A stretch of DNA of 64,000 nt from Iphione sp. A-MEVVRFRX5 (Eukaryota): positions 75,640,001-75,704,000 of the forward strand of contig OZ320316.1 in NCBI GenBank assembly GCA_976226885.1, given 5' to 3'. The notes under the pieces were generated by a model. The model searched no databases, was not told where the DNA came from, and saw nothing but the letters and a program-made list of their open reading frames with translations. Below are positions 588-61,038 of this stretch, piece by piece; position 1 is the stretch's first letter; each line of letters begins with the position of its first letter. Position numbers and translations under genes: made by a program.

Positions 588-3500
588 ACGTGCTCTCCAC
601 GAAAGACAGTTGGCGATCAGCTCACACCTACGTATAGAAGCAGGGCTGGCTGATTAAGGACCGCCGGCTGCAGCCCTGTCGGTCTACCGCGGAGACGCCG
701 TCCCTTCCCTCACGGAAACAACGTGGGGACCGTTGCCCATCCGCATTTCTTGTCGTCCATTACATTAATAAAGGCCATGCAATAACGAAATTGTGAAAAG
801 TCGGAGGGGAAGGCAAAAACACTCATGTGGAAGGAAATTACTTTTACATAAAATCCGATGGAAATCCACAAAAATCGAAATATGGTAAACTTTACCATCA
901 CGCTCTGAAATAAATAGCCTCGCTTTCAGCAGTGCGAGTCCCCATTTGTTACATAAATCAATGTTGAATCATTCGGTTGAGTGGAAAATATATTCAAATA
1001 GTGGCTGACATCTTACCGGTCCTCTTAAATCAAACAGCGGAGGTCGTTGGATATGCATCCACTGGCAACACTACGATGTTTTCTTTAAAGAGAAATGTGA
1101 ACTTTCGGTGTCACAAGAATGTCTTGGGCGAGAAAATTGTCTCGGCTGAAGCACATCATTTCTTCTCCAAAAAGTATCACCATTACATTGGCGCTCTCGA
1201 AATCCATAATTGGCAGAGAGAAGGACACTGAGAAGGTAATTGCAATACCAGAAAGACGAACTGGTGGAGTCGCCGGAGGACGCAGTTCTTAAAATCCGTC
1301 TAGGCGAGAAACAATCGGTCTTCGTGCCAGAGAATCGGATCGCTCCTAAATAAGGTCTCCATGGCTCCATCTGAGTAATTCTTTTATTTCCGTGAAGGTT
1401 ATTCAGATTTAATGACAGTTCATGACATTACTGTAGTGTGTTCGTCGCATGGTCACAGAGGCATGCAGCTTAAAGCACCCCTGTATCAATCCCATTCAAA
1501 CCGTGGCATCTGTAACATCTCCCCAATTTTCCCTTGTGAGACCGTTTAACAACCTTTACACGATAGAAGTTTAGCGTCCATCAAACAGACTGCATTCCCC
1601 ATAGAACCACGAGATGGTTCTGTCTCCTCGGAGGTCCCATTTACTGAACGCAGTCCACGAAGGAGCATGGATAAAGATGTTTCAGGACTTCCCTCGATGG
1701 CAAAGCCCGACAAAAACATTGGTGCCGCCTTGGATCTAGACCAGCGCCCAGTCACCGGCGTCCAGGAGGGACTTGGATGAATTCTGCTTGAGGTGGGCGA
1801 ATGACGGATGGTTGGCCATGGGCAGCAGGACGCCAGATTGACAGGCTAATTACTCCTCAGACATCCACCGAGCGAGTGGGAGCAGCTCACTGGACAGTAA
1901 CACTGTCTGTCCACCCAGGGAGCAGGCGGAAGAGAAGGAAAGGCTGTATGAACAGGAGCGAAGAAGCTCAGTGAAAAAATATCTTCCGGCCCTATTGGCA
2001 TGCTGTAGGTCTGATCGAGGTCAGAACTCTAGGTGGAAGATTTTAGGAAACGGGTTGAATTATTGCAGTTCATGGCACAGAATATCTCAGCTCTCGTGCA
2101 TCTTCCGCTTAGTACGGTCCAGGAAAATACTTGACGTACACGTATTACACGTAAAGAGTGTAGTTTATATGCGTGTACAACGTACGTATAAAACACACAG
2201 TTCATGTAGCATTTGAAATCGCGGTTTCCGCCAAGCAATACTCTTAATTCTTCAGATGAATATTTTTTACGGCAATTTACTATGTCAAATCGAAAATTTG
2301 CTTCAAGTAGAAAAACTAAAACAAGGACCCGAGGGATTTCATCTAAACTTATCGGAGAGTGTCATCTCTGATTCTGTCCTAGTCGCAGACGTTCTCGCAG
2401 TATCGCCACGTAATTGCTGACATTTATCGATAGGTCAAGAACATGGGAAGCTTCCGCACTAGTCTGTCGATATTCCAACCCTACTTTAGTTCTTCCATCG
2501 GCAAAGATGATCGACTAGACCATCGTCTTGTCCGACGCTGCTAAAACTACGTAGGGAATTACTAGTCCACGTATACATGAATAATTTGCCGTTCACTGTC
2601 ATCTTTTGTCAGGATACAGTACATGCCTGTTACTTCTTGAGTAATTTAAATCAGCGGAACATTTTTTTCTTTCTAACATGATACTTCTAACAGTACATAA
2701 ATTGGGCGACCATAGAGTTTTCTTATATCATTTACTTCTTCGTGTTTAATTCTTAACTGACTTTCCCACCTCATATTTAACAAATGAAATGTCTTTATCT
2801 CATTTGAGATGCGTAGCATACTACGTTATCACCATGGGCATATTAAGGGAACGACAGAGAAACTACTTAGGAAGACTAATTATTGCTAGTGGCTCTAATC
2901 AATTTGTCTAGAAGTCTGGTAGACTTTTCATTACCTTCAGCCTCAAGACTATGTAATAGGTCGTCATAAATGTAATGAAGTGCAGGACGCTTCGAGATGT
3001 ACACATTCAGTTATATAGAAACTGCGCAGATTTTCCTGGGAATTGTATCCTCACATATCCCCGAATTCCTGTTTACTAGAACGTACACCTGATATGATAT
3101 TCACTGTCATTGGAGATTACTCTTTCCAATGGACATTATCTCTGGGGGAATTTTCATTAGGATGTAATGTATATGGTTAAACAACAGTCATCACAGCTTT
3201 TTTTAGAATTGGTTAAAAAGCATCCTGTATTGCGATGAATCGGACTCAATAACAATAAGAAACCAAACATTTATCTGACAAAGTTTGAGTTTAAACAGTT
3301 TTCTCTAAATTTACCTAATCATATTTTCGCATTACAAGTGGTGGATTATGCCTGGTTTTATCCCGCCGTCCTTTCTACGGAGCAGAGTCATCATTTATGA
3401 TTGATAATTACCAGGGAAAGATAGGGAAGCGTTTTACCGGGGGGAAACTGTGCATCTTCACCCATGGGGAAATTCGATCGTTTATGTCTGGGACTTGTAG

Positions 3501-6500
3501 TAACGTGTTTTCCAGAAACTCCCGACCTGACAGACACACGTTCGAAGCAAACACGTCTAATACAAATCCTAGATGAGCTGCCTTTGTCCCAGACTGCATG
3601 CTCGCCTTCGAACCTAATGGCCGGAGCACCTCACTGATGACCTCGCCCTGCTGGCAGAGCTGCTCGGTAATCAGTACTTTCAAGGCACAGGCAATGCGAT
3701 GTGGCCCCTGTGGCCCTGCCCCTCTTGCTCGAGACTGCCGACGTTGATTAGACAGACCCCGAAAGTGAACGTCCAGTCACCATAAGGTTACTTACATCAA
3801 AGGATCAAAACACGCAGGGTACGTGATCCCCACACAGAGGTCAATTTATGGAAGACAAATATACGCCATCAAGGCTATCCTAGACAACTACACGCATTGC
3901 CTTTATTTCAGGAAGGTGTCATTTGTAGTTACACTATTTTTATTTGGAGATAATGGCGTTTCTACTACCATCAAATTATCGGTTCCTGAAGCATTTACTG
4001 TTTCCTTCTGCTTGCTTCAGACTTCCTTCGCAGCGGTTGTATTCGAAGAAAATGGAACTATTATTTTCTTGCGGAGCCATATATCACCTACCACGTTCTG
4101 TTAGTATGGCTGTCTCTTGCAGCACTCTGCGTGTTACTCTTATCAATGCCCTTTGTCGCAGGAATGACCTTTGATGGTTTGGTGGCAGCGTGTCATACGC
4201 TGTCGGTTATCTTGACTCCCTCACTGTCATCGACTCTCCCCACCCCTTCTCCTAACTGCCTTCTGTGTCAACCCTGGCCTTTCTCTCTGATGGGGCACTA
4301 TGGCTTTAGAACAGGGCCGCATGAGGTGAAATATATACATGTATTGCTGAGGGTCACATATGGTGAGGCTATGTCTGATGCAATGACTTTGGCACACTGG
4401 TGTGAAAGATGTTTAGTAGCTTTGCCAAATTCGCATGCGTTCGGATGGAGAACAAGGTAGAGGAGACTCTCGCCTTGACTCTAACCCCCAGGCCGATCCT
4501 TATACTTGGTCGCAAATAGCTTTAGCCAGCTCTTCGGGGATTTCCACTGCAGCTCCTGCGCCTTCCTCACGCGACGACGTGTCAAAGTAGAAGAGTCTAC
4601 AGCAACATGACGCCATAATGTCGTCAGCGGCTGGTTCATGTACCGGTTTGTGGAAATGCCGGTATTCAGCTTGCAGCGTGCTCGAATTAGAAAACGATCG
4701 GTTTAACTCACGTCATATGCCAGTAACACATTAGGAGGACGATGATTGTGAGTTTTTTGGTATGAATATTGTTATCATGCGAAATTCAGTTGTTGCAAGT
4801 TTCAGGCCGTTGGCCACCTTTTCAATCGGGAGTGTCTGCCCGAGGTTGCGCAATCTATCCGGTTCCTTTATACGAGCGAAAACGCTGTTTTCTCGCAGAC
4901 GCTCGCACGCAATGGTGTGTGGCCAGGAAATCAACGCAACGCACGTGGTTGGCCTGAGCCTAGCGAATAAATGGAGCCGCTGGCTGTGGCCCAGGCGCGT
5001 GTTGTCTTAGCTGGAGACGAGTAGAACTTGGAGCCTGCAACTGCTGTTTGCTTGGGTTTGAGTGCCTCATGCAAACTGTCCGAGCAGCAGGGCCTCTGGG
5101 GCAGGGGCCTGAAAAGTGCGTCCACTCCTCTTGATATCGACCGTTGAAAGCACGGAGCCATCGAGAGTGTAACTGCTGAGTGCCCCACGCCATCAGCCCG
5201 GGCCTGACCAATCTTTGATGCTCTATTTACTGTTGTCCCTTACGTACAAAATGGTCACTGGCTCACATTGATGCACAGTGGTTTTGTGTTGACCGTATAC
5301 GTTGCCGCTCTTTAAATTGCGACCATCTTGCATACAGCCATCTTGACGTGTTGTCTGAAGGATCTCATTGCTCATTCATACATAGCCAGCGTTATGCAAG
5401 TGATCGAACCTCTGGGGGTTCCCTGTCATAAATCACTGATGTGCTGTCCAAACTTGAATTCATGTTATGCAACTTAGGGTGAGCTGTGTTCGTCTCACTG
5501 CGTATAAAGCGGAAAAATTCCCATTTAGCCATATACAATCTGTCCCGTCTGTTTATGTAAGCGAACGTAATGTAAGTGTCATGGATATCGCCAGTATCAA
5601 CACATTCCTGCGGAGAAAATATCGGCCTTGGGAGCCTAAGTGTCAGTGTCCTGCCAACGGCCCCAAACACTTAAAGTGTTGCACTTCGCCACGACATCCA
5701 TAATATGCCAGGCTAAATTGTTGTTGATACAAAAGGTCAGCCAGTGTAGTGAGGAGAGGACAAACACAGTTGCCATCCTACCCCTTTCGTTGATGGTTGC
5801 ACATTTATAAGAAAAACAGACTTTACATGGACATGCCACCGACTGTCGGTGGCAAAAGCTTTCATGCTGACTGCAGTATGGGATGTTTTTCAGGCACTCA
5901 TATCCCACATATGCAATATATTTCTTGCCTCCAATTGTCAAAATGTCCAATGCTTTACTATAATAGGTTTATCCGATTTCAATATGGTCTTCCGCTTGCG
6001 CAGTTTTGAATTTTCCCCGTGTACTGTTGAGTGGTTATTTTTTCGTATCTCTCAATTTACCGACACTTTGGCCATACAATGCCGGTCTTGAGATGAGGGA
6101 AGTTGGGCATAATAAAACATTATTTAGCCTGCATGGCCGCGGAGGATGTCGTTGACCTGTCTGTGAATAGCAAAAGCCCCGAGCCGCCCGCGCTCCGTCG
6201 TTAGCACGTGCGACATCCGCCGTCGCCTTTGGCACACGGATCCGTCTTGAGTGGCCTCCCACAGATCGTCGACGGCCGCCGTTATTTATGTGGCGCGCCG
6301 TCGGCAGCGTGCCTCGCGACGACGCCATGCATTATTCAGGCAGCTACCGTCGCCAGGATGGCCAGCATGGAGAGGGGCGGGCGTGAACGGGCCTCCCGAG
6401 GACGGACCGATGCCGTCCCGCGGGGCCTTGAAGCATCGACGGCCTCACACCTTGTGTCTGGCTGTGCAATAGCACATATATCCTACCCCTGCTCCCTCCT

Positions 6501-12500: not shown

Positions 12501-15500
12501 CCGTAGTGGCGGTTTTTTGTTCGGCTATTTGTAGCCATGGATGAATGTGATTGATCCCAAGGTGTGCACACAGATGTGCACTGAAGGTTAGTTGAGTACA
12601 CAAGAAATGAACTAGCCTTATCCATCTATAAATGGGACACCAAGACATGTCCTAAGCCCGCGTGATGAGATTTTAGGAAACTTGCCGGCGCCAAATTGCC
12701 TTCAATAGATTCAAATTAAAGCGCTTGTGCGTGACAATTAAACAGTCTCCCTTCACGGTGATGAAAAACCGTTATGGTCAACGCTAGGTCACCTGTGGAA
12801 CGAACATATTGCGTGCTTTGTCTTTGTAAGAAGGAGGACGCACATAGAACGCCTAGCAATTGTAGTCTCTCTGTAGGCGGCACCCTAGTGTTGGCAGCGA
12901 TAAACGTTAAAGTGGCCCCTTTAAAATGGTTCGTTCAAGGGCTGTAGTATTTAAGTGTGCAGCCGTTCTTTGTTCTTGTTCATATGATGTGCACAAAGTC
13001 CGAGTATTACTGTTCAGTTTTCGTGCTGTCATTCGAATGGACCATTAACATTCTTCGCAGTGTAGAAACATTCTACACTTTAGTACTGTCCAGATAACCA
13101 AAACACTGACTAGAATGCCTTATTTGATTCAGTATTTAGACAAATATGCATATTCTTTCGGAAAATAACACTAGTTAGCCATTCTTTACATGTATTTGCA
13201 TGGAACATCAATGGCTTGTACAGTATATCCTCTCTTAATGCCTATCTAAAGTGAAACGCCATACTCCGAATAGACTTGGGGACTTAGCTTTAACTGTCCA
13301 CAAGTGATTCTGTCCACATTGTGATCTGCTGCTATATTAAGTAAAATGTCTTCGTTTTAAATTGGTCATGTCCGCATTATGATCTGTCCTCAGAGTGGCA
13401 TTTCACTGTATATAAATTTATACCGAGAGCTTATTTTGTCTTCTCGAAATTTTGCCTCAGAAGAGTAGATTAATATAGGTTTGTCATATGCATGTTAGGT
13501 GTCACCAGGATTTTAGAGACAATATATAGCACGTACAATTCGCCTATGTTTCTGTGATGTTGTAAATTAGTTTGACGGTAGCATTGTGGCTGTTTTACTG
13601 AATGAAATCCGTATTACATTGGTAACTGACGGGCAGTTGTCAGATTTTCCATAGGTTCAGTCCAGCATTAACATAAAGTGTTCTAATTTTTTTATTCCCA
13701 AATAACATCCAACGGTGCAAGTATGAATAGAGAAAACAAACCTAAAGGGTCCCACCAATATCATCCTAAGGAAATATATTGAGTATTACCAATACAGTAT
13801 GTTACCTGTTTAAATATACGCCATCTTCTACTTGTATATATACGTCTGTTTCACATCTGTTCATTCCTTAACAGCGATTAGGTACCTTGAGCTCAAGAAA
13901 ACATCTTCAGGAGCTGTGTTATATCCATGTAAATATACAGCCTGTATAGACTATTGTACTTCATACCAAATCAATACGTGGTTGGTAGGTTATACTGATT
14001 CACCCACACGGCCTCTGCTGTACAGAATGTTTTTGTTCTAACCGTATTCTATATGTCAGGCCTTGATACTCGGTACCAAATCAGCGCTGTAGTTGATTAC
14101 GTACACTGACGCGCCAGCCCCTCTATGACTGAAATTCATTCTTGGCACATTTCCCAAGAGGCACCGCACGTTCAAAAACAGCTTAGTTCACTATGCAGCT
14201 ACCTTGTGCCGCAGGTGACTCCAGGCTTGGCAGCAGTTCAGTCGACCTCTCCCGAGCGCCCGTGACGACACCTTCCATGAAAAGAGACCCTGTCCTTGTA
14301 CCTGTATTGTGCCTGTTAAAGCCTCTCTTGTTGTCATCGTCACTGTTAGTAGAAACACATCGGCTAGATTATTTGTCACAATACACCAAGTTACAGCTCG
14401 TTCTGAATCGAATAGGCCTTTTACCACATGTACTCACTTACATGAGGTGCTGCGCATAAATTTCGCCAAGCAACCTCGCAACGTAAAATTGGTACAGAAA
14501 ACGCGTTGGTTACTTCTTTATAGAATTCGATACAATAGAGACATTGTAGAAAATTAAAGTGAATATGAGGACATGTAGTTCTCTTTTCTAATGGAATGTT
14601 TCATCAGAATAATTGCGTTCTCCGTTCATTAGTTCAGGTAACAAACAATTAGTGACTACAAAATGGAACTTCAGTATGATGTGGTAGTAGGTTTTAAATT
14701 ATTACTGTTGACCCATATCTGGAAGGCTTGGACACAACTTCATTTTTTCTTTGATTGCTGGAGCCGTTAAAACATTTTTTTCTACAGATTTTTGCTGAAA
14801 ATGTAAAGTAGTCTCTATGCAGGAAACATATAAGAAAAGTAAGGATGGACAGCAGGATTATTAGCAGGGACCTGCGTTGATTTCAATAAGCACGACTAAA
14901 ACACATTTTCGGACATAGAAATATTGTTTTACGGGATTCAATAAACAATGCACCTCTGGTGTTTATATGAAGTGTACAAATTTCATTCGTCATCATATTC
15001 GCTTGTCTCAGATGATTCAAGTAATAAAGTCTGCCTGTTATGTATTATTTCCAGTAGGATACTGAAGTCAGTAATTCGAAAAAGACGACGTTCAGTTTTA
15101 AGCCATCTCAGTTTAAATGGAAAAAACTGAACCAGCAGCTGTGTGGTCTAGGTGCAGCTCCCACTTATTCTAGTCGTGTAACCTAAGTAGGTAGAGTAAC
15201 AAGTGTTTCAGCTAATATCTGCTGTGACTATTATTGCCAGTAATGATATGTTAATTATGTAAGCAATGCAACACACTTTTTGACAAAAGTTTGCTGTGAA
15301 TTCTAGGAGCAGGCCCCAACCACGTAGATTAGCAACTCACGCCGGGGCAACTCAAATAGGTAGACAGCCCAGAATATAAAAAGGGCACGTTTTACAGGTC
15401 CTAATGCTATAGAATATCTATGAATAACTGAAAAGAAAAGCGGACAACCCTGTGAGAAGGGAGTCTGGTCCCTCCGATGGTCGGATAAGAAGGTTCTTGC

Positions 15501-46200: not shown

Positions 46201-49200
46201 AGGATACATACCTGACGTTAGGCCATACGAAGCACATCTTTATTACTATTAAGGCCTTTAATGGAAGGATTTATATGGTAGGCAGTAATCCATATAAACC
46301 CCACAACGCACCTAATCACTTCCTTTCGGGTCCGTGGACTGTCGTCTTCCCACGACATTGGAGGGAAGGGGCAAGCTTTCTTGGCTAGCGTTCTAGCGAA
46401 CTAATGCCTATCGTCAGTGGTACGAGCGGCTCTGCGAGGTGCTATTGAGGTCCGGTCGGTTGGAATCCCACGACGGGCGAGGTTGGTGCCAGTTTCCCGC
46501 CTCCCAATTCCCTGGACTTCGCCAGGAGATGCGGACGTCGGAGCGACTTCCAGGGCAGGAACTGGAGCTGTACATCCCAAGAGGGACGGGGCGCGTCTGC
46601 CACCATATATGACGAGCTAAGGGGCGGGGGGAGCATAGATGAAATGATAATGAGAAAGTTATTCCTATGCGGGTTCGGTATTGAGATTACGCAGTGCGTC
46701 GCGCCTTTCTCTTTATCACCACATACGCCTGTGTGGTTTTGATTGATGCGATACGATGTCGCCATGTCGCCTTGAGGATGACTGGCCGCCGGGTAGGCCT
46801 TGGCTACAATCACACATCTGCCAATCAGCGTCATATGTAAGGTGCCTGCTTATCTGCCCATTCTTCTTCATAACGCCCGGGCGGGTACGGCAGTATCTGT
46901 GATTGCTTCTGATTAACCGATATTACAGGCAATATAAAGGAGCAGGATGCTCAGATATTTTAGCCAGTTCTTGGCCCTCGTGTACACTTGCTATCGAACT
47001 GCTCTTGTCTGCATACTCTATATCCACCGTTTTTGTTTCAAATCCAGATTCGACTGCGGAACGGGGCCATCGCAGATCACGTCGGAAAACAAAGTCGAGC
47101 TTGGCCAGTGGAATACGATCACTGTACACAGGAACGACTGGAATGGCTGGATCCAGCTCAATGACGGACCGCAAGCGAAGGGCAGGTCGAAGGTCAGCTT
47201 CCCCAGATGCTGTCTTCAAGATGATCACGTTTCATAGTCTTATGAGCAATTATCAGGCTTCACGTGAACACTGGTGTCACAATAACTTACAATCTTCCGT
47301 TCATAATCACATAATTGCAGCTAGCAACGAAATGGCAAATGAACTAATTGAACATGAAATTCCTAGATTGGCAAAGTCGAACAAGCTTTCTTATGTACGT
47401 GTATTTTGTGTCGGAGTTTCACACACGATAAACATCTCACTATGAGACTGAGTAGGTGCGACGAGCAGGCCTTCACGATATGTATGACATCAACCAGTAT
47501 AAAAATATATTTCATATCTATGTTATACCAACCGCTGGTACATCTGGCAGAAACGTAGGCTACTTGTAGATTTATCAGCTTTAACTAGTGATGCAGATTC
47601 TGTCTCCAAATCCTTCACCTTTTTTCCTGGTGGAGTTGGCCTCATTGTTATCTTTTATTCTCTTGCAGGGCCTGTATTCGCGCATCACGTTCCGGGAGGA
47701 CCTTTACCTTGGCGGATACACCAACACCACGCTCATTGGCGATCGCACGGGCATGCGTTGGGGCTTTGTCGGCTGCGTGCGTAAGCTCGAGATCAACAAC
47801 CGGAAGTATGACATGCGGAAGGGAGCGTTCGTTGGTGACGCTATCCATGGGGTCGACGTAGGTACGTTGGTCGCTTGCCGTCCCAAGGACGTGTTTGAAT
47901 CCGTGGTACTAGTGCTCGTTTTCCTCCCTTCTACAGCCTCTCAAAGATGACTATGGTGCCAGTCCAGCAGTATGGGCCTGTGTTGACTAACATCAAGGCT
48001 AGGTGGCGCGAACACCTATGAAGCAAACCCCTATCATGCGCTCAGTTCTTATACATGTACATGTATTAATGTTTCCAGTATCTATTCTTGTGTGAGCATG
48101 ATGAGAGCATGTTGTTCTCCCTCCTCTGTCCTCTGGAAATGGACCGCACCTTCCTGGGCCTAGGATATTAATCGTTTGCCATTTGCGTCAGGGAAAGTAA
48201 ATCTCATTCGTATATTACAAGGAGGATATAAATTATGATGATACGCGTATGTATAAGAGGAGTGAAAACTAAACTCGTATATCTAAATATTTAAGAATGG
48301 AAATTGGTAATTTTGGGGGGTTCCACTCGGCTTATTCTGCTTATTCATTCGCCATCCGAATTTTTGAATTGCCCATACAAAAGAAAAAATATGTTTACCT
48401 TGCCTATTTCATGTTTTATTTTCGATTTGCAATGAATACTCACATAAGTGGTTGGAGTAACTACCTCAAAACCAGTAAAATGATAAAACGGTGACATCAG
48501 ATATGATTAACTCTATCGAATAAATACATGTACAACAGCAGCAACCACCTGCACTGTTTTTGCACATGGACCCAGCATATTCTAGCAAATGAGACAGTAA
48601 AATCGTAAATTTGGCCAATACTGAATTCGTGATTGTTTTCAGCCCTTTCTTTTATCCCCAACTTTTAATAATCATTACATTAAACTGTTGTTTTAGGTAA
48701 CGGGTCTATGGATGTGACAATGCATATGAATGCATGTGTTATACCTTATAATATTAAGATCCTATATAAAGATAATTTTGATGTGTAAATCATGTACTAT
48801 TAGGTCTCTCCTTGATAGCCTGTCCTGTCCTATTGGCTAGAATATGCTGTTCTCTTCACCCCGTCTGTGCTCACCATTCGCTATACCCCTTTGCACCAGC
48901 TAACGATCGCCATATTGTTTTGTGCTTTTTGTCATCACAGAAGGTACGTAAAAGCTGGTGACGTCAGGAATGTAAGGAGTTTGCCATATGCCATATTGTA
49001 AACTTAGTCCTCCTAACGTCCTCGCATGCCCCAATCCCGACCCTAAAATTTCGCACCGACGTTTTAACATCGATGTATTGGTGTCCGTCAACTCTGTACG
49101 AGCTAAGCATGACCAAATCCAAGGCATATCATTAAGAGCGTGCAATGTGTATCAACATCTTCATCCATCATAACCTACTAGCATTAATCGATCATTGCTA

Positions 49201-52200
49201 AGGAACACGTGTTACTAATCATCTTGAATGTATGTGTGGTGCATGGTTGGACAAGGTAATAGGATTCATACACTAACCTCACTTTTTAGGTCTAGTCTTC
49301 TTCAAGTAAAGGCTTTTCATTCTGAAGGCGTTTTCTCCTCTATCGGCCTGATCAACTGTAGTTCTATGGATCGAAGTTGGTGTCTAGGAATGCTTGCGTG
49401 AAAGATTGTAGGAAGAACTGGAAGAGGATATGCTCACCATGACCTACCTACAATTGACTTCACTTTATATGCAGCTCTCTGTAATGTTCTCTTTACGGGA
49501 GGTATCCATCTGTCAAAGTGTTGGCTAATGATGTATTATCTGTGTGTAGGCGATGATTTTAATTATACGTTCATAGATTTTATTAACTCGTTGTTTTTGT
49601 TTTACTATAATATGAACTCGGAAAATAATCGATGTTTTCCCCTTCATTGTGGACATCTTAAAACAACTTCTTAGGAACTAGCCTGACAGAGATTTCTTCT
49701 ATCTTATGAAAATGTACCTAGAAATATGGTGTTGTAGCGATGAACTATTGTCTGATATGCATTCATTACATATTCATGTGGTTATCCCTCTTTTATTTAG
49801 GACTGTGGGTTGATTGTTTAAAAGTACCCATGCTTTCAAAGCCATCTTCCTATAATTTGCTTGAGATAAAACCATTGTCAGACGACTTCCAGCACACGCC
49901 TTGTTTGGCATTTCCCCCTCAGAGAGTCGCCCACAGGCCTTAAAAACTTGCGTTGAATTAATTTCCGTTTCGTCCTTGACAAAAGGGCTATGGGGCATTG
50001 GTATGTGTACCGCGTCTGGCGCGAAGTTTAAAATGCGACTGCTTAACAGGTGAATGCAGCAGCCACGTGTGTGTGGATGTGAAATGTCAGAACGGCGGCT
50101 CATGTGTGGCCGACTCTGCAGACAGTCATGTCTGTCTGTGCCCACTAGGCACGGCTGGAGACAGATGCGAGAACAGTAAGTATACCATGGTCCTTGACGT
50201 CCCAGAGCATGTTTTCTTGCATATAGAACAGTTGTACACATATCACACAGAGTAAGGCCGGCGTTCCATGTACACGGAATACGTGTCCGGAGCACGGAGG
50301 CTATCCGGAAATTTAGCCGGTTTTTCCGTACCTCCGTACAGGTGCTTTCCATGTGTGCGTGCATGCGTGCATGTGTGTATGTTTGTGTGAGAGAAAGAAA
50401 GACAGAGAGAGAAAGAGAGAGACAGAGAGATATTTTTCATGGAGTTTGAAGCATATTGGTGGAAATTGTGTGGTTTTTCATGGAGTTTGAAGCAGATCGG
50501 TGGAAATTGTGCGGTTTTTCATGGAGTTTGAAGCAGATTGGTGGAAATTGTGCAGTTTTTAGGCAAATGATATGCAAATTATAAAATAGTTCACATCATC
50601 TAACATGAGATACACAGTGAGTATCCAGCTGAAAACATGCATCTTTGTATCCTACTGGTCCGTGGGGGTATCCGTGCTCCGGAATCCGGGGAAATTTACG
50701 GCCCAGGTTCGTTTTCCACCTCCGGACACGGACCACGGACCATGGACCACGTACACATGGGTGGTCATCTGTTAAAATCAGTGAGTTCGTTTTTTTCCGC
50801 ATTTCCACACACGTGCTCCGGATGCATTTTCCGTATACATGGGGAGCCAGCCTAAGTCTATGACCATGGTGAGCCGTCTCCCTTCCATATATTTTGTTTA
50901 CCACAGAATAAAGTATAAAAACGTTGTAATCTGTCATTCATTCCATAAACAAGATACATATGAATGTAATGAGAGCTTCCTTTGTCCATTTCCTCCGACT
51001 GTGCATGAGGATTCTTGTAAATGATAGAATAGTTGTTTATTTTCTCGGAGCTTTCTAGGAGTTAATGATATTACACCACTCTTGCAGGGATTGATATTCA
51101 AGTAACTTCGTTTAGTGGCAACTCCTACCTGCAGTTCATTGGCCTGCGGAGAACTGTTTTATCCTTCACCGAAGTCGAGGTGGTGTTCAAGGTAATTACA
51201 TTCTAGATGTTCTTTGAATCCAGTTTTGGTGTTCATGAGATTATTTGCTAAAATCACAGCACAGCTGCTTATTATTCGTGGGCTCTCGCTTTATCTAATT
51301 TTGTCAATCGATTGGCTTAAAATATGGGGTATTTTGTTGAGAAAGTGACTTTTTGTGTTGTCAGCGTGGTAAATGTATTTGCCATTTATTCATTAAATTC
51401 TTCTCCTTTTCGATGCCAGGCTGAGTACCATACCGGGCTAATATTCTACAACGGTTACACAACAGACGGAAGCGGAGACTTCATAAGCATAGCCCTAGTC
51501 GACGGTTATTTGGAATATAGGTTTGACCTGGGAACTGGACCCGCTATAATCAGGTGGGGTCTTCAGTAGGAATTGCTCAAAGCATTGAGTGTTTATACAC
51601 GTAGTCCTTTACAAATGTCTTCTTTAAAATGTCGGGAGAAAAGATGTCATATTTAGGGTTATATTAGTTTTTTTTTAATTTGGCTACGTTTTTAGTACAT
51701 AGTCCATTGATCCCTTGTGGAATACCCAAGTTGGCTACTGATAGCATGAATGTTGATGTACGAGGTCAAAAACCCATCCCTATGATCTTGGCCTTGGTCG
51801 TCTGACTTGTGCTATTCATTTGATCCGAACCCTCACCTCATGACCTCGTCACCCCTGTCTTTATTCCTATAGGAGCCGTCAGCCGGTCACGCTGCACGAG
51901 TGGCACGTGGTACGCGTGTCGCGGACCGGACGGGACGGCTATCTACAGATCGACAACCAGGCTGCCATCGAGGGCATGTCCAAGGGTGCCTACACGCAGC
52001 TCACGCTGACGCTCGACCTCTTCGTAGGCGGCCACCGCAACTTTGACGAGGTCGCAAAGAATGCCATGATCAAAGAATCCTTCGTCGGTTGCATACAAAA
52101 GGTGTGTGATTGCTAGTATTGGTATGTTGGGGGCATTGGGTGGGGTGGGAGGAGAGCAGAGTAAGAGACAACCAGTGTTCAAGGTGAAAGATGGGTCGCG

Positions 52201-55200: not shown

Positions 55201-58200
55201 ATTTTAGTCATTAGATTACTATGTCTCTGTCCACAAAATAATCGTCGTATCTGTGTGTAAATAGTAAACAGTATTCTATGAAGTATCTCTGTTTAGCTTT
55301 TACCAGACACCAAACATGTTATTTGAGGTAATTTGATAGTTAAAATGATTAAAATTAAGCTATATGATGTTAGATGTAGAACTGGATGGCGTTACAGATA
55401 TTTTCAAGATAATTTGATAGTTTAAGGCCTGTATATGCATGTTGTAATAAGTTTAAAGCCTGATTTTCTGTGATCTGTATTAATATCTATGATAGCATAA
55501 GGCATCCAGTTGTAACAATTTGTTTGAAATTATATCATATTCTAGTGCAGTGTTTGGCTGTATGAGGCCTTATAATTGAATGACTCTGTACACTCTGACC
55601 AATTTAATCACTGTATACTCTGTATTACTTCTTCTGCATTACGTCTGCATATAAGTACCTACCAGGTTCCCGGCAGCCTGCAGTCGATGACATCTCAGTT
55701 ATTGTAGACAGCATGCCTAGAGGCGGGTGTTTCTGAGGGCCCCAGAAACACCCTTACCCTCATGCTGGCGCCAGATTTTCAGAGATGTCACCGGCTGTAA
55801 GCATGCCGCTGCCTGGCCTTCTCTAGCGTTGAGGTATTGACTCTGACTCAACTCGAGTTGGATGTAGATTATACTAACACCATCCCTGCATGGTATAACC
55901 TCCCAAGTTTTCCTCTATAGAATAACCCTTCTCCCTCCCACCATGAAACTACAGAGACATCCGCCGTAAACCTGTCAATTTTGGCGAATCTATGGGACGG
56001 ATATCAGTGTTCCTATGTCCGCTGCAGCGTTTCTGCGGTACGACACCTGTACTTTTCGGGTGCCATTGTCACCTCCTCTCCTAAACAAACTAAACGAGAC
56101 ATTATCTTCATGTCGCTGAAATTGTCAGGTCGGTTTACGCCGGTGCCGACGGGATACCTTCTCTAAGGACAAGAACACTGAACACAGATTTGCTCACAAA
56201 CACACTCCAGATACCTTCTCACCCTTTTCCCAATAGTGGCGTCTCCCTCGTGGCTTTAGGGATTGATTCCATTGTGGGATTTTGGGGGTGAGTCGGCATG
56301 TACAACTTGTTTGATCCTGGTCTTTATCTGAGCAAGTCTGTACGTGTTGTAGCCTTTCATAGACTCACTCTCTGCTCCGATCTCACTCGAAACGCATGAG
56401 TGATACTGCAGACCGATGTCACTTTTGTGCTCCGTTTTCTTATTCTCATTTCCTTTGTGAGCTTGGATGGTGATAGCTGTCCTTGCCCGCGGTTGTTTTT
56501 TTCCTTCATTTTCATTTCCTATAACACATTTGATTGCTGTTGGGTTTTGTTAATTGTAATTCTCTTATCGTAGTTGTGAAGCAATTTTCAGAAATTTTGA
56601 AGGCGAAGATGTCCTTACAGCAGCCGACATTTTTGTACTATTTTTTGCAACCGTAAGTGTCGACACTGTCCACTGTTTATACAATGCCTTTTTCGTTTGA
56701 ATAACATTTAAGGCCCATTAAACTTATTTCTGTTCATATTCACTGCCACTGCAGAGGTTTTGGACCGATCTCGGTTTCATTTTGCGCGATCTAGGAGAGG
56801 TCAAAACGTCACTGAGTCTCCAGGTGAAAAAGATGGCAAGACCACGCTTACAAACTAGTTTTCACACTGCACCATCCCCCACCCTTACACGAGTGTGCTT
56901 ACATTATCTTTATTTCAATTACTACGTCCCTCCAGGGAGGGAGGTTTTTATAACTTTGGGTTCAGTATTCTTCTCAGTTCCTTTGACCGTGTTGGCGGCA
57001 TGTGGAGCACGTATATCTGCTGGCCAGTGGACTATTACGCTGTAATGTGCTGCCTCCATGTCGAGAGCAAATTTATGCTTCACTGATGGGCGCCATTATT
57101 GGATCGGATTGAAAAGAGCTCCCGGAAATTGTCCATTTTGATGTTTAATCAAAGACTCAGTTATATTATTTGATCATCTAAATTAATCTTGATGTTTTGT
57201 GGACATCATATTTTACGGGGAGAATGTTTTCGCCATAACGAAACAGTTTCATTTTGACTGCCCTTTTCCCAGAGTTGAAAACACGCAAATTAGGTCATCG
57301 ATTATCAGAATTCCTGCTCTTTCTTAAGAAATACAAATAGTGCTTTTCACCAGAACGTTTGGAAGGGCTTAGGAAATTTGCATTCCACGACAACTATCAT
57401 TAGGAGCACAAAGGGATATCAACACCATCAAGTCTTTACTAACATAACTTGCCCTGTCACTGCATGCCATGTGTGCATGCAAATGTCGTCATAGCAGTGT
57501 TGCGCTTGCCTGGCCTCCTGTCTTTAATATAAGTATGCATTGATTTCCTTCACAATACCACACAGTATAAAACAGGGTATGTGTGATATTAACTACTACA
57601 CTATGGAGATTATATGGTCATTTTACTCTATATTTGTGACCGTGCGCGTATAAAAAATACTCTCCGATGGACGTTTTGGCAAGTGAACCTATTTCTAACC
57701 TCAGTTGGAGGGACCTCATGCTTTATATAGAACTCCGCCAGGGGTCGTAATTGTTTGGTTTAGAGTGGTCCCCCGTCATGCTCATCTCCTGTAAAATTTC
57801 ACATTGCCTTACATTTCTGAATAGGCAAAGAAGTCTTTTTAAGTGAGCCTGGTCCCTCCACTGAGCTCTTGTCACTGTGTTTGTGATTGTCCATGCGAGT
57901 AGACCTGGTGAGCGTGTGAAGTGCTGCTGCTCCCGCTGCCTCCCTCCGCCAAGCGCCGCCAGGCGTCGCCAGTGTTGCTCACCGCCTGCCTCCGTGCGGG
58001 GCGACCGTGGTGTCTGACGGTGTTGCCACCTGGTTGTTGTCCCCCGCACCACACTAATGCTTGTCACTTGGTTTTGTTTTCACTCCTCACTTGCCTTGCA
58101 TGCCATCGTATGGTGGAAAATGAACAGGGAAAGCCCGCAGAGGTATGTGCTCAGTTCATCGACTGCAGCCCGCCCAGTTTCTTTGTCCAAGTATACTTAT

Positions 58201-61038
58201 ATTGCGGCCTCGCTCTGGCCATCGCACACTTCTACCGACTCCTCTCTGTGCCCAGACCCGGAACACATGCAGACACAAACACAACACCCAGACCTCATCC
58301 CTACTTTAGGATGACCATACACTGGACCCCCCTCGTCCTTCCTGCCCCCGTAGGGTCGGTAAGGGTGCACATAGGGTGAAGCCGACAGGCATAAACCGGA
58401 GGCATGCTCGCCAAATTCGCACCAGGTGTAGCCTCACATGGCACGCCCTCTTAGATATTTAATAGGGAGTCCTTTGCACTGAGTGGTTCGTTAACACACT
58501 AGTTCATTTAAGAATCTTAGTACTTCTCCCTGTCTTCATACAAGGATGCATCAGTGTTGTAAAGCAGTAAATATCATCATATAGCAGTATGTATCTTTAC
58601 CCTCTTTCCAAAATACCTGCGTCTGTAATCGGACACGATATCTAACATGAAAGAACATGTACATTGCATGGATTTCCATAATGAATTAATCTATTGCTTA
58701 TAGAGTAATAACATGTATAAACGCCCTGCTAATCCTGATTTCTAACCATTTAGGTTTAAGTGTAGGATTGATAACACCCCATTTTCGGGTGTGCCTATAG
58801 CATGCTACTCTATCCTCAGTAGTCCATTCTATAGGTTGGGTGTGTGCTTGGACGCGCCTCCTCTGGTCCCTCCTGGGCGAGACCCACTCTGTGTCCTCCC
58901 TTACCGACCACCACAGACAGTAGTTCTGGGCCTATTGTGCGTTTATTCGTTATAACACGGCTGGGATGTGCTAATATATAATAAGTGTTTGATGGGGAAA
59001 AAGCACCTCCAGCACTTCAGTTCAACAATCCTTTTTAATAGTTTGCTTGTAATATCTAGCCCTATTAAAGAAATATGGGATTATTTTGATATTGAGTGAG
59101 TTTTATATTGGGTTCGTATTTATTTCTACTTAACTGCGTTCTTTTCATTCTAAGTCACTTTCGCTGCAGTTCTCTTCCAAATCCAAGCAAATGTAAGGGT
59201 TGATGGGCAACTGCTCAGCACTTTGAAAGCTCATGATAATTGGCGGCGACCTATCGGTGGAGGACACCAAACGTTACACATCCCAGCCGGCCTGTTTCCC
59301 TTGCAGCCCGCCTGCCCATGAGTGTAATCAATCAGCACGTTTGACGCTAACACTGTGTGCCTGTCCCGTTATACAGAGCTCCAGGAGCCCATCCGCATCC
59401 CGATGTTCTCCGGAGAGAGTTATCTGGCCTACGTCGACCCCTTCATAATGCAAAGGTAAGTGGGGCGCTGCAGCCTAAAATAACCAAACGCCCGTATTGA
59501 TGATGCGCACTTTAAAGGAACTTACATAAGTGTATATCAACATGTACTTGTAGCCCCCATGTATCCACTATTTTGGTAGCTTAATTCTGATTGAAACGTT
59601 AGTTTGTCTCAGTTCTCTGTGATGTTAAAATGCTCATTTACGCTTACTTTAACCCTAACCCCCTCCCCCCGGGTTGCAGACCATTGTCGGTACCCTAATC
59701 TAATGATACGTTTAGTTTTAGTAGCAGTAGTTTTATTGAATGTCAATAGCGCCAGATAAAATTGTCGAAATATATATCAACAGCCTCCAGTAAGAATTTT
59801 AACACAAACATCCAGTCCGGTATTTGAGGCAGTTAACAATGGAAGCGATTTGAATTTAACCCATAACTCCTAGGGTGCGTGGAAAGAAGATCGATATCCA
59901 AATGAAGATCCGAGCCATGGGACCGGAAGGCCTTCTCTTCTGGACCGGCGAGGAGAAGATGACGTCATCCAGCGACTTCCTGTCCCTCGGGATCAGGGAA
60001 GGTCATGTGCAGTTTAGCTACAACCTTGGCAGTGGGGAGGCTGTTATAATCTATAACGAGAGCCGGATAGATGATGGCAATTGGCACAAGATTAGGGCTC
60101 AAAGGTTGGTGCAGTTAATTGCTTGATGGTATNNNNNNNNNNNNNNNNNNNNNNNNNNNNNNNNNNNNNNNNNNNNNNNNNNNNNNNNNNNNNNNNNNNN
60201 NNNNNNNNNNNNNNNNNNNNNNNNNNNNNNNNNNNNNNNNNNNNNNNNNNNNNNNNNNNNNNNNTGCGTCTATTGTCTAGAAAACGTGTACATGTATATT
60301 CATACCAGTGTCCATACTAGCTCCGAGAGTGACTAAAAAAGATAAGCTTACAATTTAGGCAAGTCTTTTAGCATTCTGTAGTCCATGCATATTCTTAGTC
60401 ATCTACTTATTTTCGATTTGCCTAGATACGAGCGCATCGGCTACTTGGAGATTGACGGCACCGAGGTCATTGAGGGTGCCTCGCCTGGTCCTCTGAAACA
60501 ACTTAACACTCAGAGCAAGCTCTATGTTGGTAAGTTACAGGTCATACGTTGGAGTGTACCTTTTACGTCTTGTATTACAGTCCGTCGCCACAGCAATGGA
60601 AGTTTCCGTTCAGCCACGCCTAGCATCTTCATCTTTGAAAGAGTGTCAACGGATGCTTCTTTTAACGTACATTGTACAAGATACAGGAAATGTTATACAC
60701 ATAACAATACAGTATGGTATAAATGTCATTTACATCAAAAGACGTTTTGTACATTCTCAGCAGATACAAGTATAAAATGCCGGTTTAGCGACCTTAAAAA
60801 CTTGTTAGGGATATGTTGTGCTCTTAATTTGCGGCCATGTCCAGTATTCTCTAAATGTTTAATTCTGATGTGGCAATTTGATATTTTAGGAGGCATGGAG
60901 GACATTGTTTTATCAACCAAGAAGAAATTCAAGAGTGGTTTCGTGGGTTGCGTGTCCAATATCACGCTGGCGACAGACTATCACATTGATCTCATCGGCG
61001 AAGCCGCCGAAGGCCAAAACATCCAACAGTGCTCATAG
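30506..61038 (+). CDS. EGFLAM: Pikachurin/EGFLAM orthologue, spliced and 5'-incomplete: join(30506-31249,39096-39297,47048-47192,47669-47861,50050-50175,51088-51191,51420-51553,51873-52101,54682-54862,59377-59455,59874-60104,60426-60529,60890-61038)
   Basis: All 12 introns are GT-AG with matching phases. The joined exons total 2621 nt (2 nt of a split codon plus 873 codons including TAG). Domain order EGF-LG-EGF-LG-EGF-LG and motifs ([78 protein letters not shown]) match my recollection of vertebrate pikachurin better than agrin or perlecan. No database search was run. Confidence 0.93.
35657..35669 (-). promoter_or_regulatory. CTCF-like motif, exact match to CCRSYAGRKGGCR
   Basis: Reverse complement reads CCACTAGATGGCA. 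Motif match only. Confidence 0.45.
37173..37244. repeat. 36-bp tandem duplication (2 copies, 1 mismatch)
   Basis: catatgtacatgtatgcatcta(a/g)ttaaatgcatatc twice. Each copy contains TACATGTA and a tgcat...atgca inverted pair. Confidence 0.9.
37959..38153 (-). mobile_element. Decayed L2/CR1-group LINE, 3' end of ORF2
   Basis: Minus strand reads [46 protein letters not shown], resembling the TR..LP..T....GP.LWN.LP......FK..LK C-terminal pattern of these LINEs. In-frame stop. Pattern recognition only. Confidence 0.5.
38932..38949. repeat. (AT)9 microsatellite
   Basis: Read directly. Confidence 0.9.
39096..39297 (+). CDS. EGFLAM: Exon 2: N-terminal part of LamG1 (phase 1/2)
   Basis: Acceptor ttcctttctgtag, donor AG|gtaagc. 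Encodes [68 protein letters not shown]. Confidence 0.95.
47048..47192 (+). CDS. EGFLAM: Exon 3: middle of LamG1 (phase 2/0)
   Basis: Acceptor ttttgtttcaaatccag, donor AAG|gtcagc. Encodes [48 protein letters not shown]. Confidence 0.95.
47669..47861 (+). CDS. EGFLAM: Exon 4: C-terminal part of LamG1 (phase 0/1)
   Basis: Acceptor ttttattctcttgcag, donor G|gtacgt. Encodes [17 protein letters not shown]...[13 protein letters not shown]...GDAIHGVDV. Confidence 0.95.
48941..48943 (+). CDS. EGFLAM: Candidate 3-nt alternative microexon (phase 1/1) between LamG1 and EGF2
   Basis: ctaac...ttgttttgtgctttttgtcatcacag|AAG|gtacgt. Would add one Glu. The donor hexamer is identical to that of exon 4. No transcript evidence. 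Confidence 0.5.
50050..50175 (+). CDS. EGFLAM: Exon 5: EGF2 (phase 1/1)
   Basis: Acceptor gcttaacag, donor A|gtaagt. Encodes [42 protein letters not shown]. Confidence 0.95.
50351..50430. repeat. Alternating purine/pyrimidine tract followed by a GA-rich microsatellite (inside the MITE)
   Basis: atgtgtgcgtgcatgcgtgcatgtgtgtatg, then (GA/GAAA/GACA)n at 50389-50430. Confidence 0.85.
50433..50555. repeat. Minisatellite, 41-bp unit x3 (inside the MITE)
   Basis: tttttcatggagtttgaagca(t/g)at(t/c)ggtggaaattgtg(t/c)(g/a)g starting at 50433, 50474 and 50515. Confidence 0.95.
51088..51191 (+). CDS. EGFLAM: Exon 6: start of LamG2 (phase 1/0); not in the ORF track
   Basis: Acceptor cactcttgcag, donor AAG|gtaatt. 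Encodes [35 protein letters not shown]; its 104 nt exactly bridge the phases of exons 5 and 7. Confidence 0.9.
51420..51553 (+). CDS. EGFLAM: Exon 7: LamG2 (phase 0/2)
   Basis: Acceptor ctccttttcgatgccag, donor AG|gtgggg. Encodes [45 protein letters not shown]. Confidence 0.95.
51873..52101 (+). CDS. EGFLAM: Exon 8: LamG2 (phase 2/0)
   Basis: Acceptor ctttattcctatag, donor AAG|gtgtgt. Encodes [29 protein letters not shown]...[12 protein letters not shown]...FVGCIQK. Confidence 0.95.
54204..54217 (-). promoter_or_regulatory. CTCF-like motif (1 mismatch)
   Basis: Reverse complement reads TCGCCAGGGGGCGC. Motif match only. Confidence 0.45.
54682..54862 (+). CDS. EGFLAM: Exon 9: end of LamG2 plus EGF3 (phase 0/1); not in the ORF track on this strand
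   Basis: Acceptor attctatcatag, donor A|gtgagt. Encodes [60 protein letters not shown]. Confidence 0.95.
58128..58142 (+). CDS. EGFLAM: Candidate 15-nt alternative microexon (phase 1/1) between EGF3 and LamG3
   Basis: aacag|GGAAAGCCCGCAGAG|gtatgt. Upstream there is no AG for 153 nt, an ACTAAT branch-point motif at 58053, a pyrimidine tract and clustered TGC. Frame-preserving with no stop. No transcript evidence. Confidence 0.5.
59377..59455 (+). CDS. EGFLAM: Exon 10: start of LamG3 (phase 1/2)
   Basis: Acceptor cctgtcccgttatacag, donor AG|gtaagt. Encodes [27 protein letters not shown]. Confidence 0.92.
59874..60104 (+). CDS. EGFLAM: Exon 11: LamG3 (phase 2/2)
   Basis: Acceptor cataactcctag, donor AG|gttggt. 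Encodes [54 protein letters not shown]...[11 protein letters not shown]. Confidence 0.95.
60133..60264. other. Assembly gap (132 N) in intron 11
   Basis: Run of N. The flanking exons still join in frame. Confidence 1.
60426..60529 (+). CDS. EGFLAM: Exon 12: LamG3 (phase 2/1)
   Basis: Acceptor tttcgatttgcctag, donor G|gtaagt. Encodes [34 protein letters not shown]. Confidence 0.95.
60890..61038 (+). CDS. EGFLAM: Exon 13: coding part of the terminal exon, LamG3 C-terminus and TAG stop
   Basis: Acceptor tttgatattttag. Encodes [49 protein letters not shown] followed by TAG at 61036-61038. Confidence 0.95.

Follow-up and report, generated by a model that had tools for sequence, protein, structure and literature searches.

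Background

Splice-site-sequestering hairpins are known to regulate alternative exons, e.g., the stem-loop at the 5′ splice site of tau exon 10 and TSL2 of SMN2. The recognition of an exon of only three nucleotides (nt) is puzzling, since its splice sites lie too close together for normal exon definition. Microexons of this size are known, such as the retina-enriched microexon of CLTC (PMC9303857). A code in cis has been described for eMIC-dependent exons, in which the branch point is enriched for CUAAY, AG is absent from a long zone and a UGC lies close to the 3′ splice site (PMC8797185; bioRxiv 10.1101/2024.09.17.613571), and microexon programmes are largely rewired between lineages (PMC8797185). 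The ratchet points of recursive splicing in Drosophila carry ultraconserved motifs in which a splice acceptor abuts a splice donor (SA/SD), have a donor stronger than that of the recursive-splicing exon (RS-exon) and lie mostly in long introns (PMC8605326). Here, we describe a candidate 3-nt exon, AAG, in an intron of a pikachurin-like gene located within a stretch of 64,000 nt from Iphione sp. A-MEVVRFRX5 (assembly GCA_976226885.1, contig OZ320316.1, positions 75,640,001 to 75,704,000, forward strand), hereafter referred to as the window.

The candidate AAG (48941-48943) is probably a genuine 3-nt exon that adds one glutamate (Glu) to the hinge between a laminin G domain (LamG1) and the following EGF domain; from its splice signals and their conservation, we assign this reading a probability of roughly 0.57. 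In several respects, the candidate resembles the neural Srrm234/SRRM4 eMIC microexons: it is tiny, preserves the frame, lies at a domain boundary of a synaptic/extracellular-matrix gene, and displays the CUAAY motif and the AG-free zone; its UGC falls between branch point and AG, its donor is strong and its intronic flanks are highly conserved. The rewiring of microexon programmes between lineages also fits its restriction to one clade. Unlike eMIC exons, the acceptors of which are typically weak, the candidate has a strong acceptor and is known from genomic sequence alone; its module is also embedded in a predicted hairpin, with a second donor behind it.

Results

The candidate exon and its splice signals

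The features of the candidate and its surroundings are as follows (slashes mark splice junctions; L001 is a locus of the species closest to the window species among the loci compared).

47669..47861, + strand: exon 4, the last LamG1 exon (acceptor ...ctcttgcag; C-terminal part of Pfam Laminin_G; ends in phase 1, ...GVDV + G)
47862..47867, + strand: exon-4 donor GTACGT, score 3.57; unlike the candidate's donor, this hexamer is not conserved (GTTAGT in L001)
48850..48899, + strand: pyrimidine- and UGC-rich upstream region, moderately conserved
48900..48904, + strand: branch-point-like CTAAC (ATAAC in L001)
48905..48940, + strand: pyrimidine tract, AG-free to 48938, with UGC at 48922-48924 and ending in the acceptor cAG (score 4.58); identical in L001
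48941..48943, + strand: candidate 3-nt exon AAG (G/AAG/GT = GAA GGT, inserting Glu); identical in L001 at 3442-3444
48944..48949, + strand: candidate donor GTACGT, score 5.14, the highest of the donors scored in the gene; identical in L001
48972..48977, + strand: second donor-like site AAT/GTAAGG, score 3.74, approximately that of the exon-4 donor; ATGTAAGGAGTTTGCC identical in L001
50050..50175, + strand: exon 5, an EGF domain, both of its ends in phase 1 and its acceptor weak (score -4.87)

The host gene, located on the plus strand, is a pikachurin-like gene of the annelid type, the product of which is a synapse matrix protein. Per-exon Pfam matches give the domain order EGF (pikachurin-type), LamG1 (three exons), EGF, LamG2, EGF and LamG3, with the EGF_Pikachurin match falling below its cutoff (19.1 bits vs 27). 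The full-length relatives (Tegillarca, Pecten, Haliotis, Gigantopelta and Coccinella) carry the source names pikachurin or pikachurin-like. The EGF-LG1-EGF-LG2-EGF-LG3 order, together with the pikachurins as nearest named relatives, places the gene in the pikachurin/EGFLAM-like group. A run of 132 N at 60133-60264 lies inside its LamG3 region.

The intron harboring the candidate is 2188 nt long, interrupts the frame in phase 1 and separates the last LamG1 exon from the EGF exon. Exon 4 ends in ...GTC GAC GTA G and exon 5 opens with GT GAA TGC; inclusion of AAG would therefore yield V-E-G-E-C (GVDV-E-GECSS) instead of the V-G-E-C obtained when it is skipped. The tract ...ttgttttgtgctttttgtcatcacag closes with the AG at 48939-48940, making cAG positions 48938-48940. 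The direct junction is GTCGACGTAG-GTGAATGC, and that with the exon is GTCGACGTAG-AAG-GTGAATGC. The GTAAGG of the second donor sits 28 nt downstream of the candidate donor, and together with the cAG acceptor it would bound a 31-nt exon (48941-48971) reading E-G-T-stop. The diagnostic strings are GTCGACGTAGAAGGTGAATGC for inclusion of AAG, GTCGACGTAGGTGAATGC for skipping, and exon 4 joined to AAGGTACGTAAAAGC for the 31-nt unit. The first-pass annotation of this DNA had placed the CTAAC motif, the AG-free tract with its TGC, the AAG and the GTACGT correctly; the pyrimidine/TGC-rich stretch that it reported at 48845-48897 is present, the donor of exon 4 is indeed the same hexamer (GTACGT, 47862-47867), and the codon phase agrees with its phase-1 intron and its Glu insertion (GVDV-E-GECSS).

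Scored with approximate metazoan splice-site weight matrices, the candidate ranks first among the 440 AG-N3-GT sites on both strands of the window (sum 9.72; runner-up 6.91), in line with the earlier impression that its splice signals were the cleanest in any intron. First-order Markov simulations yielded 0.06 sites per 128 kb whose sum matched or beat that of the candidate, and no site that did so in acceptor and donor score alike. The candidate donor (5.14) surpasses the real donors scored (2.85-4.68), and the candidate acceptor (4.58) surpasses those of exon 5 (-4.87), exon 6 (2.48) and a 15-nt microexon of the same gene (-9.86), though not that of exon 4 (9.33). The distal acceptor behind AAG scores -0.72, i.e., 5.3 bits below the proximal cAG. 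In its sequence signals, the candidate matches a microexon, with an acceptor and a donor around a frame-preserving unit of no more than 27 nt, and in the window species it carries the eMIC code in cis (UGC at 48922-48924, AG-free zone 48900-48938, CTAAC at 48900).

The acceptor tract of exon 5 (50025-50049) is very weak in the window species and pyrimidine-rich in L001. The weak exon-5 acceptor may bear on the tolerance or usefulness of a strong acceptor upstream.

Conservation in the sister species

A key question is whether these signals are under selection. Open reading frames running across exon 4 occur in many related genomes, and DNA was compared for twelve loci (L001-L012) and for L013, a contig of 577 nt. 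L001 and L002 are two runs from one sample series and were counted as one species. Exon 4 is 95% identical to L001 in amino acids and 83% in nucleotides. Of the 50 fourfold degenerate sites in exons 4-5, 28 (56%) differ in L001, so that neutral divergence is close to saturated in this comparison. Under these conditions, all blastn matches between the window and L001 correspond to coding exons (3, 4, 5 and 6) except for two islands in the candidate's intron, at 48550-48590 and 48830-48985, the rest of the intron being unalignable. The second of these islands contains the candidate.

48830..48985, + strand: conserved intronic island, 83% identical over 159 nt (blastn), with an inner part of 85 nt at 96.5% identity

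A block of 66 consecutive identical bases opens with TAACG, part of the branch motif, takes in the tract, cAG, AAG and GTACGT, and reaches GGTGACGTCA; it is followed by three mismatches and then by 16 identical bases that include GTAAGG. The whole module, i.e., the branch point, UGC tract, cAG, AAG, GTACGT and ~40 nt downstream, is near-identical in L001. With 96.5% identity over 85 nt, the island is more conserved than the coding exons (82-83%). For the stretch 48845-48960, which the first-pass annotation had singled out for comparison across species, the outcome is thus strongly positive in one sister species, L001. This conservation argues for a selected splicing element, for which a Glu-adding 3-nt exon appears to be the simplest reading. 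Two further segments initially taken for intronic islands, 51102-51195 and 59385-59461, turned out to be coding (exon 6 and another coding exon, respectively).

A second microexon in the same gene offers a useful comparison.

58128-58142: 15-nt microexon encoding RKARR in the pikachurin-like gene, at the EGF3/LamG3 junction, with UGC motifs upstream

It is present in L011 (~4360-4375), where the AG, GT, length and peptide are kept and the changes are of the synonymous type (AAA to AAG, AGA to CGA). The candidate resembles it in its location at a domain junction of the same gene, in forming a conserved island within an unalignable intron and in the upstream UGC. Unlike the 15-nt microexon, which shows coding-type changes and flanks ~75% identical in L011, the candidate is known from two species and has near-perfect flanks.

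Predicted RNA structure

Two predicted structures accompany the candidate, one covering its splice sites and one upstream.

48900..48967, + strand: local hairpin, with a 12-bp stem pairing UGUGCUUUUUGU (tract) with ACAGAAGGUACG (acceptor, exon and donor) and an outer stem CGAUCGCCA/UGGUGACG
48573..48597, + strand: 5′ arm of a long-range stem, inverted repeat I1 (L001 3197-3221)
48825..48849, + strand: 3′ arm of the long-range stem (L001 3325-3349), ending ~50 nt upstream of the branch motif

For the local hairpin, the predicted energy is -24.2 kcal/mol (z -3.75 over 70 nt), and it begins and ends where the perfect identity does. Folded with more flanking sequence, it has a z-score of about -1.7 or -1.8, and the opposite strand gives -1.38. 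The predicted hairpin is identical in sequence in both species and hence carries no covariation information. The long-range stem is different in this respect: among its 23 bp, 19 pairs are unchanged in L001, two show compensatory changes (A-U to G-C), two are changed on one side and none is broken. The window's duplex has an energy of -33 kcal/mol and that of L001 one of -42 kcal/mol, and the loops (227 nt in the window, 103 nt in L001) are unalignable. Because of the compensatory changes, the long-range stem argues for a function of the sense-strand RNA. When the whole region is folded, the minimum-energy prediction for either species contains the hairpin as well as the long-range stem.

As in tau exon 10 and SMN2 TSL2, the 5′ splice site lies within the predicted local stem, the opening and closing of which could set the level of inclusion; unlike in those cases, the predicted stem also covers the 3′ splice site and the pyrimidine tract.

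Other identities for these sequences were considered and rejected. The flanking inverted repeat at first resembled the terminal repeats of a miniature inverted-repeat transposable element, but it is orthologous in L001 and covaries. The island is not a repeat or transposon, since no second copy with up to 3 mismatches exists in the window and none was found in the 13 loci. A small nucleolar RNA was dismissed on inspection of the sequence, in which the only C-box-like UGAUGA is antisense and lacks a D box. An Rfam scan at E up to 10 found no family in the island.

Distribution among relatives and points against the exon

Several observations weigh against a Glu-adding exon. The island and a convincing AG-N3-GT site are absent from the orthologous intron (253-4139 nt) of eight relatives (L006, L012, L003, L010, L004, L007, L005 and L008), of which L006 and L012 form the next sister pair by exon-4 identity. 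An isoform with one additional residue was not found: all pikachurins retrieved through exon-4 open reading frames (ORFs), HMMER searches of representatives with the exon-4 peptide, and region 300-460 of the Tegillarca pikachurin have one residue between DV and EC. This set comprises full-length mollusc sequences and an insect sequence, two Logan transcripts and the spliced fragment P0015, none of them from the clade bearing the island. The candidate is known from genomic DNA, the matrices behind the scores reflect general knowledge of metazoan splice sites and give approximate absolute values, and the branch motif CTAAC becomes ATAAC in L001. A 3-nt exon cannot show coding-type substitutions, and conservation therefore cannot tell an exon from another functional element. 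The complete identity, which includes free tract positions and the hairpin loop, surpasses what splice signals need, and the identity of the flanks exceeds the ~75% seen around the 15-nt microexon in L011 despite similarly diverged exons. Finally, the conserved stretch also contains two motifs typical of DNA-binding factors.

48959..48966, + strand: perfect palindrome of the cAMP response element (CRE) type, TGACGTCA, inside the conserved stretch and identical in L001
48908-48916: YY1-like motif CGCCATATT, within the perfectly conserved stretch

TGACGTCA occurs four times in the window (20619, 30597, 48959 and 59960) against 1.0 expected, a count of four being reached in 1 of 100 shuffles. One copy adjoins the second-best AG-N3-GT site of the window, on the minus strand near 20602. 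Just past the island, at 48984-48998, lies a GCCATAT tandem repeat that resembles CGCCATATT; its copies are not conserved in L001.

The distribution bears directly on the age of the element. It is confined to the lineage that unites the window species with L001, and a gain in their common ancestor is the simplest account. The Glu insert proposed in the first-pass annotation is supported in part, in that the L001 island argues for a selected splicing element; missing from the eight other relatives, the element is a clade-specific feature rather than an old bilaterian microexon. The conserved hairpin, second donor, long-range stem and CRE palindrome, none of which that annotation mentions, would also be compatible with other functions. 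Scans of metagenome contigs for exact patterns of the island gave zero matches. In L003, the orthologous 4.1-kb intron contains AG/AAG/GTGCTA at 13497-13499, with an AG-rich tract, a poor donor and no similarity in the flanks, which is probably due to chance. In P0015 (ENA contig, 957 nt, a more distant relative), an ORF runs from intron-3-like sequence through exon 4 straight into exon 5 (GVDV-GECS); either that species has lost the intron or the contig derives from a transcript spliced in part.

Discussion

Alternative explanations

Another important question is whether the element acts in splicing without adding Glu, which we regard as rather improbable. Such an element could be a ratchet-point-like site, with the intron removed in two steps, either via the distal AAG/GT junction (0 nt) or by excising the included 3 nt again, or a regulated poison exon, 48941-48971 (E-G-T-stop), lowering pikachurin output via nonsense-mediated decay. 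The locus does share features with the Drosophila and vertebrate recursive splice sites that have RS-exons (PMC8605326; PMC6224609): acceptor and donor are nearly juxtaposed and ultraconserved, and tens of nt downstream a weaker conserved donor closes an out-of-frame exon with a stop, which donor competition could discard. With the second donor 28 nt away and weaker (3.74 vs 5.14), this is the layout of the Drosophila RS-exon. CAGAAG is, moreover, a tandem acceptor of the NAGNAG type, the site regenerated after a first step would consist of the original exon-4 donor context plus GTACGT, and the weak acceptor of exon 5 (-4.87) could gain from a stepping stone. However, a true 0-nt site would have AG and GT adjoining, and here only the weak distal AAG (-0.72) abuts the GT; the first AG after the branch point is the cAG, which lies 3 nt before the donor and scores 5.3 bits higher, and use of this preferred AG keeps AAG in the product. 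The intron is also short for a ratchet point, at 2188 nt rather than tens of kb, as these sites reside in very long introns (PMC8605326). Relatives splice the orthologous intron (253-4139 nt) without such an element, and a poison exon gives no reason for keeping the internal GTACGT, which outranks all other donors scored in the gene.

An island with no role in splicing we consider unlikely. It might be a structured intronic RNA, such as a young microRNA (miRNA)-like hairpin, or a DNA element (CRE/ATF plus YY1-like sites, an enhancer or an internal promoter), the splice-like signals arising incidentally where a U-rich arm pairs with a purine-rich one. The perfectly identical bases span the same interval as a 68-nt hairpin (arms ~33 nt, -24.2 kcal/mol, z -3.75), conservation extends to loop and tract positions that splicing does not need, TGACGTCA (48959-48966) and CGCCATATT (48908-48916) are classic factor sites, and clade restriction is frequent among young miRNAs and enhancers. 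As an miRNA precursor, however, the hairpin is poor, with a terminal loop of 4 nt, four G-U pairs in its 12-bp stem, an internal loop of 8 positions and a z-score that weakens to about -1.7 or -1.8 when more sequence is folded; folding of the opposite strand is poor (z -1.38), and the island has no Rfam match at E up to 10. Compensatory changes in the neighboring stem point to the sense-strand RNA rather than to DNA, the branch motif, AG-free zone and UGC all stand in the register of a 3′ splice site, and only ~4e-5 equally good AG-N3-GT sites are expected by chance per 85-nt element. A functionless chance juxtaposition of splice-like signals is scarcely credible. Every window has a best AG-N3-GT site, the best one seen was the one picked, and eight relatives do without the element; yet only 0.06 sites of such quality are expected per 128 kb, and 66 identical bases in a row at neutral divergence have a probability of ~0.44^66. 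In the 4.5 kb compared, the only other non-exonic alignment is the partner arm of the adjacent stem, and the diverged exons and unalignable intron of L001 exclude that it is the same species or a contaminant. The conservation in L001 thus effectively refutes chance.

A possible mechanism

If AAG is a Glu-adding exon, its use would add a residue to the single-residue hinge that joins the final LamG1 strand to the first cysteine of the following EGF domain, so that V-G-EC becomes V-E-G-EC. The exon would presumably be alternative and regulated at the RNA level. Pairing of the tract with AG-AAG-GUACG may mask both splice sites by default, and inclusion may depend on an opener, such as an Srrm234/eMIC-type factor that reads UGC, probably in neurons. 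The second donor could let the spliceosome first define a unit of 31 nt, after which the proximal GTACGT, being the stronger donor, would prevail, much as in recursive splicing, so that 3 nt remain. The long-range stem with its compensatory changes may be part of the same RNA-level module, and the element would have arisen in the ancestor that the window species shares with L001. In this full form, i.e., a clade-specific 3-nt exon operating as an RNA device with a masking hairpin, a covarying stem and a decoy donor, and in that sense a hybrid of microexon and recursive splicing, we offer the proposal as tentative, possible rather than probable.

Conclusions

To our knowledge, three-base exons are almost never annotated. 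The architecture of the candidate is compact: both splice sites lie under a predicted hairpin, another donor follows, and a covarying stem adjoins it. If the candidate is a true exon, it would provide a simple invertebrate model for the definition and switching of ultra-short exons. Should the hybrid of microexon and recursive splicing be correct, it would explain how splicing can recognize an exon much shorter than the steric limit of exon definition allows. Comparative islands in unalignable introns can rescue microexons that annotation misses. For the protein, a true exon would mean that the LamG1-EGF hinge of pikachurin, length-invariant in all other sequences seen, is tuned by a single residue in one annelid lineage.

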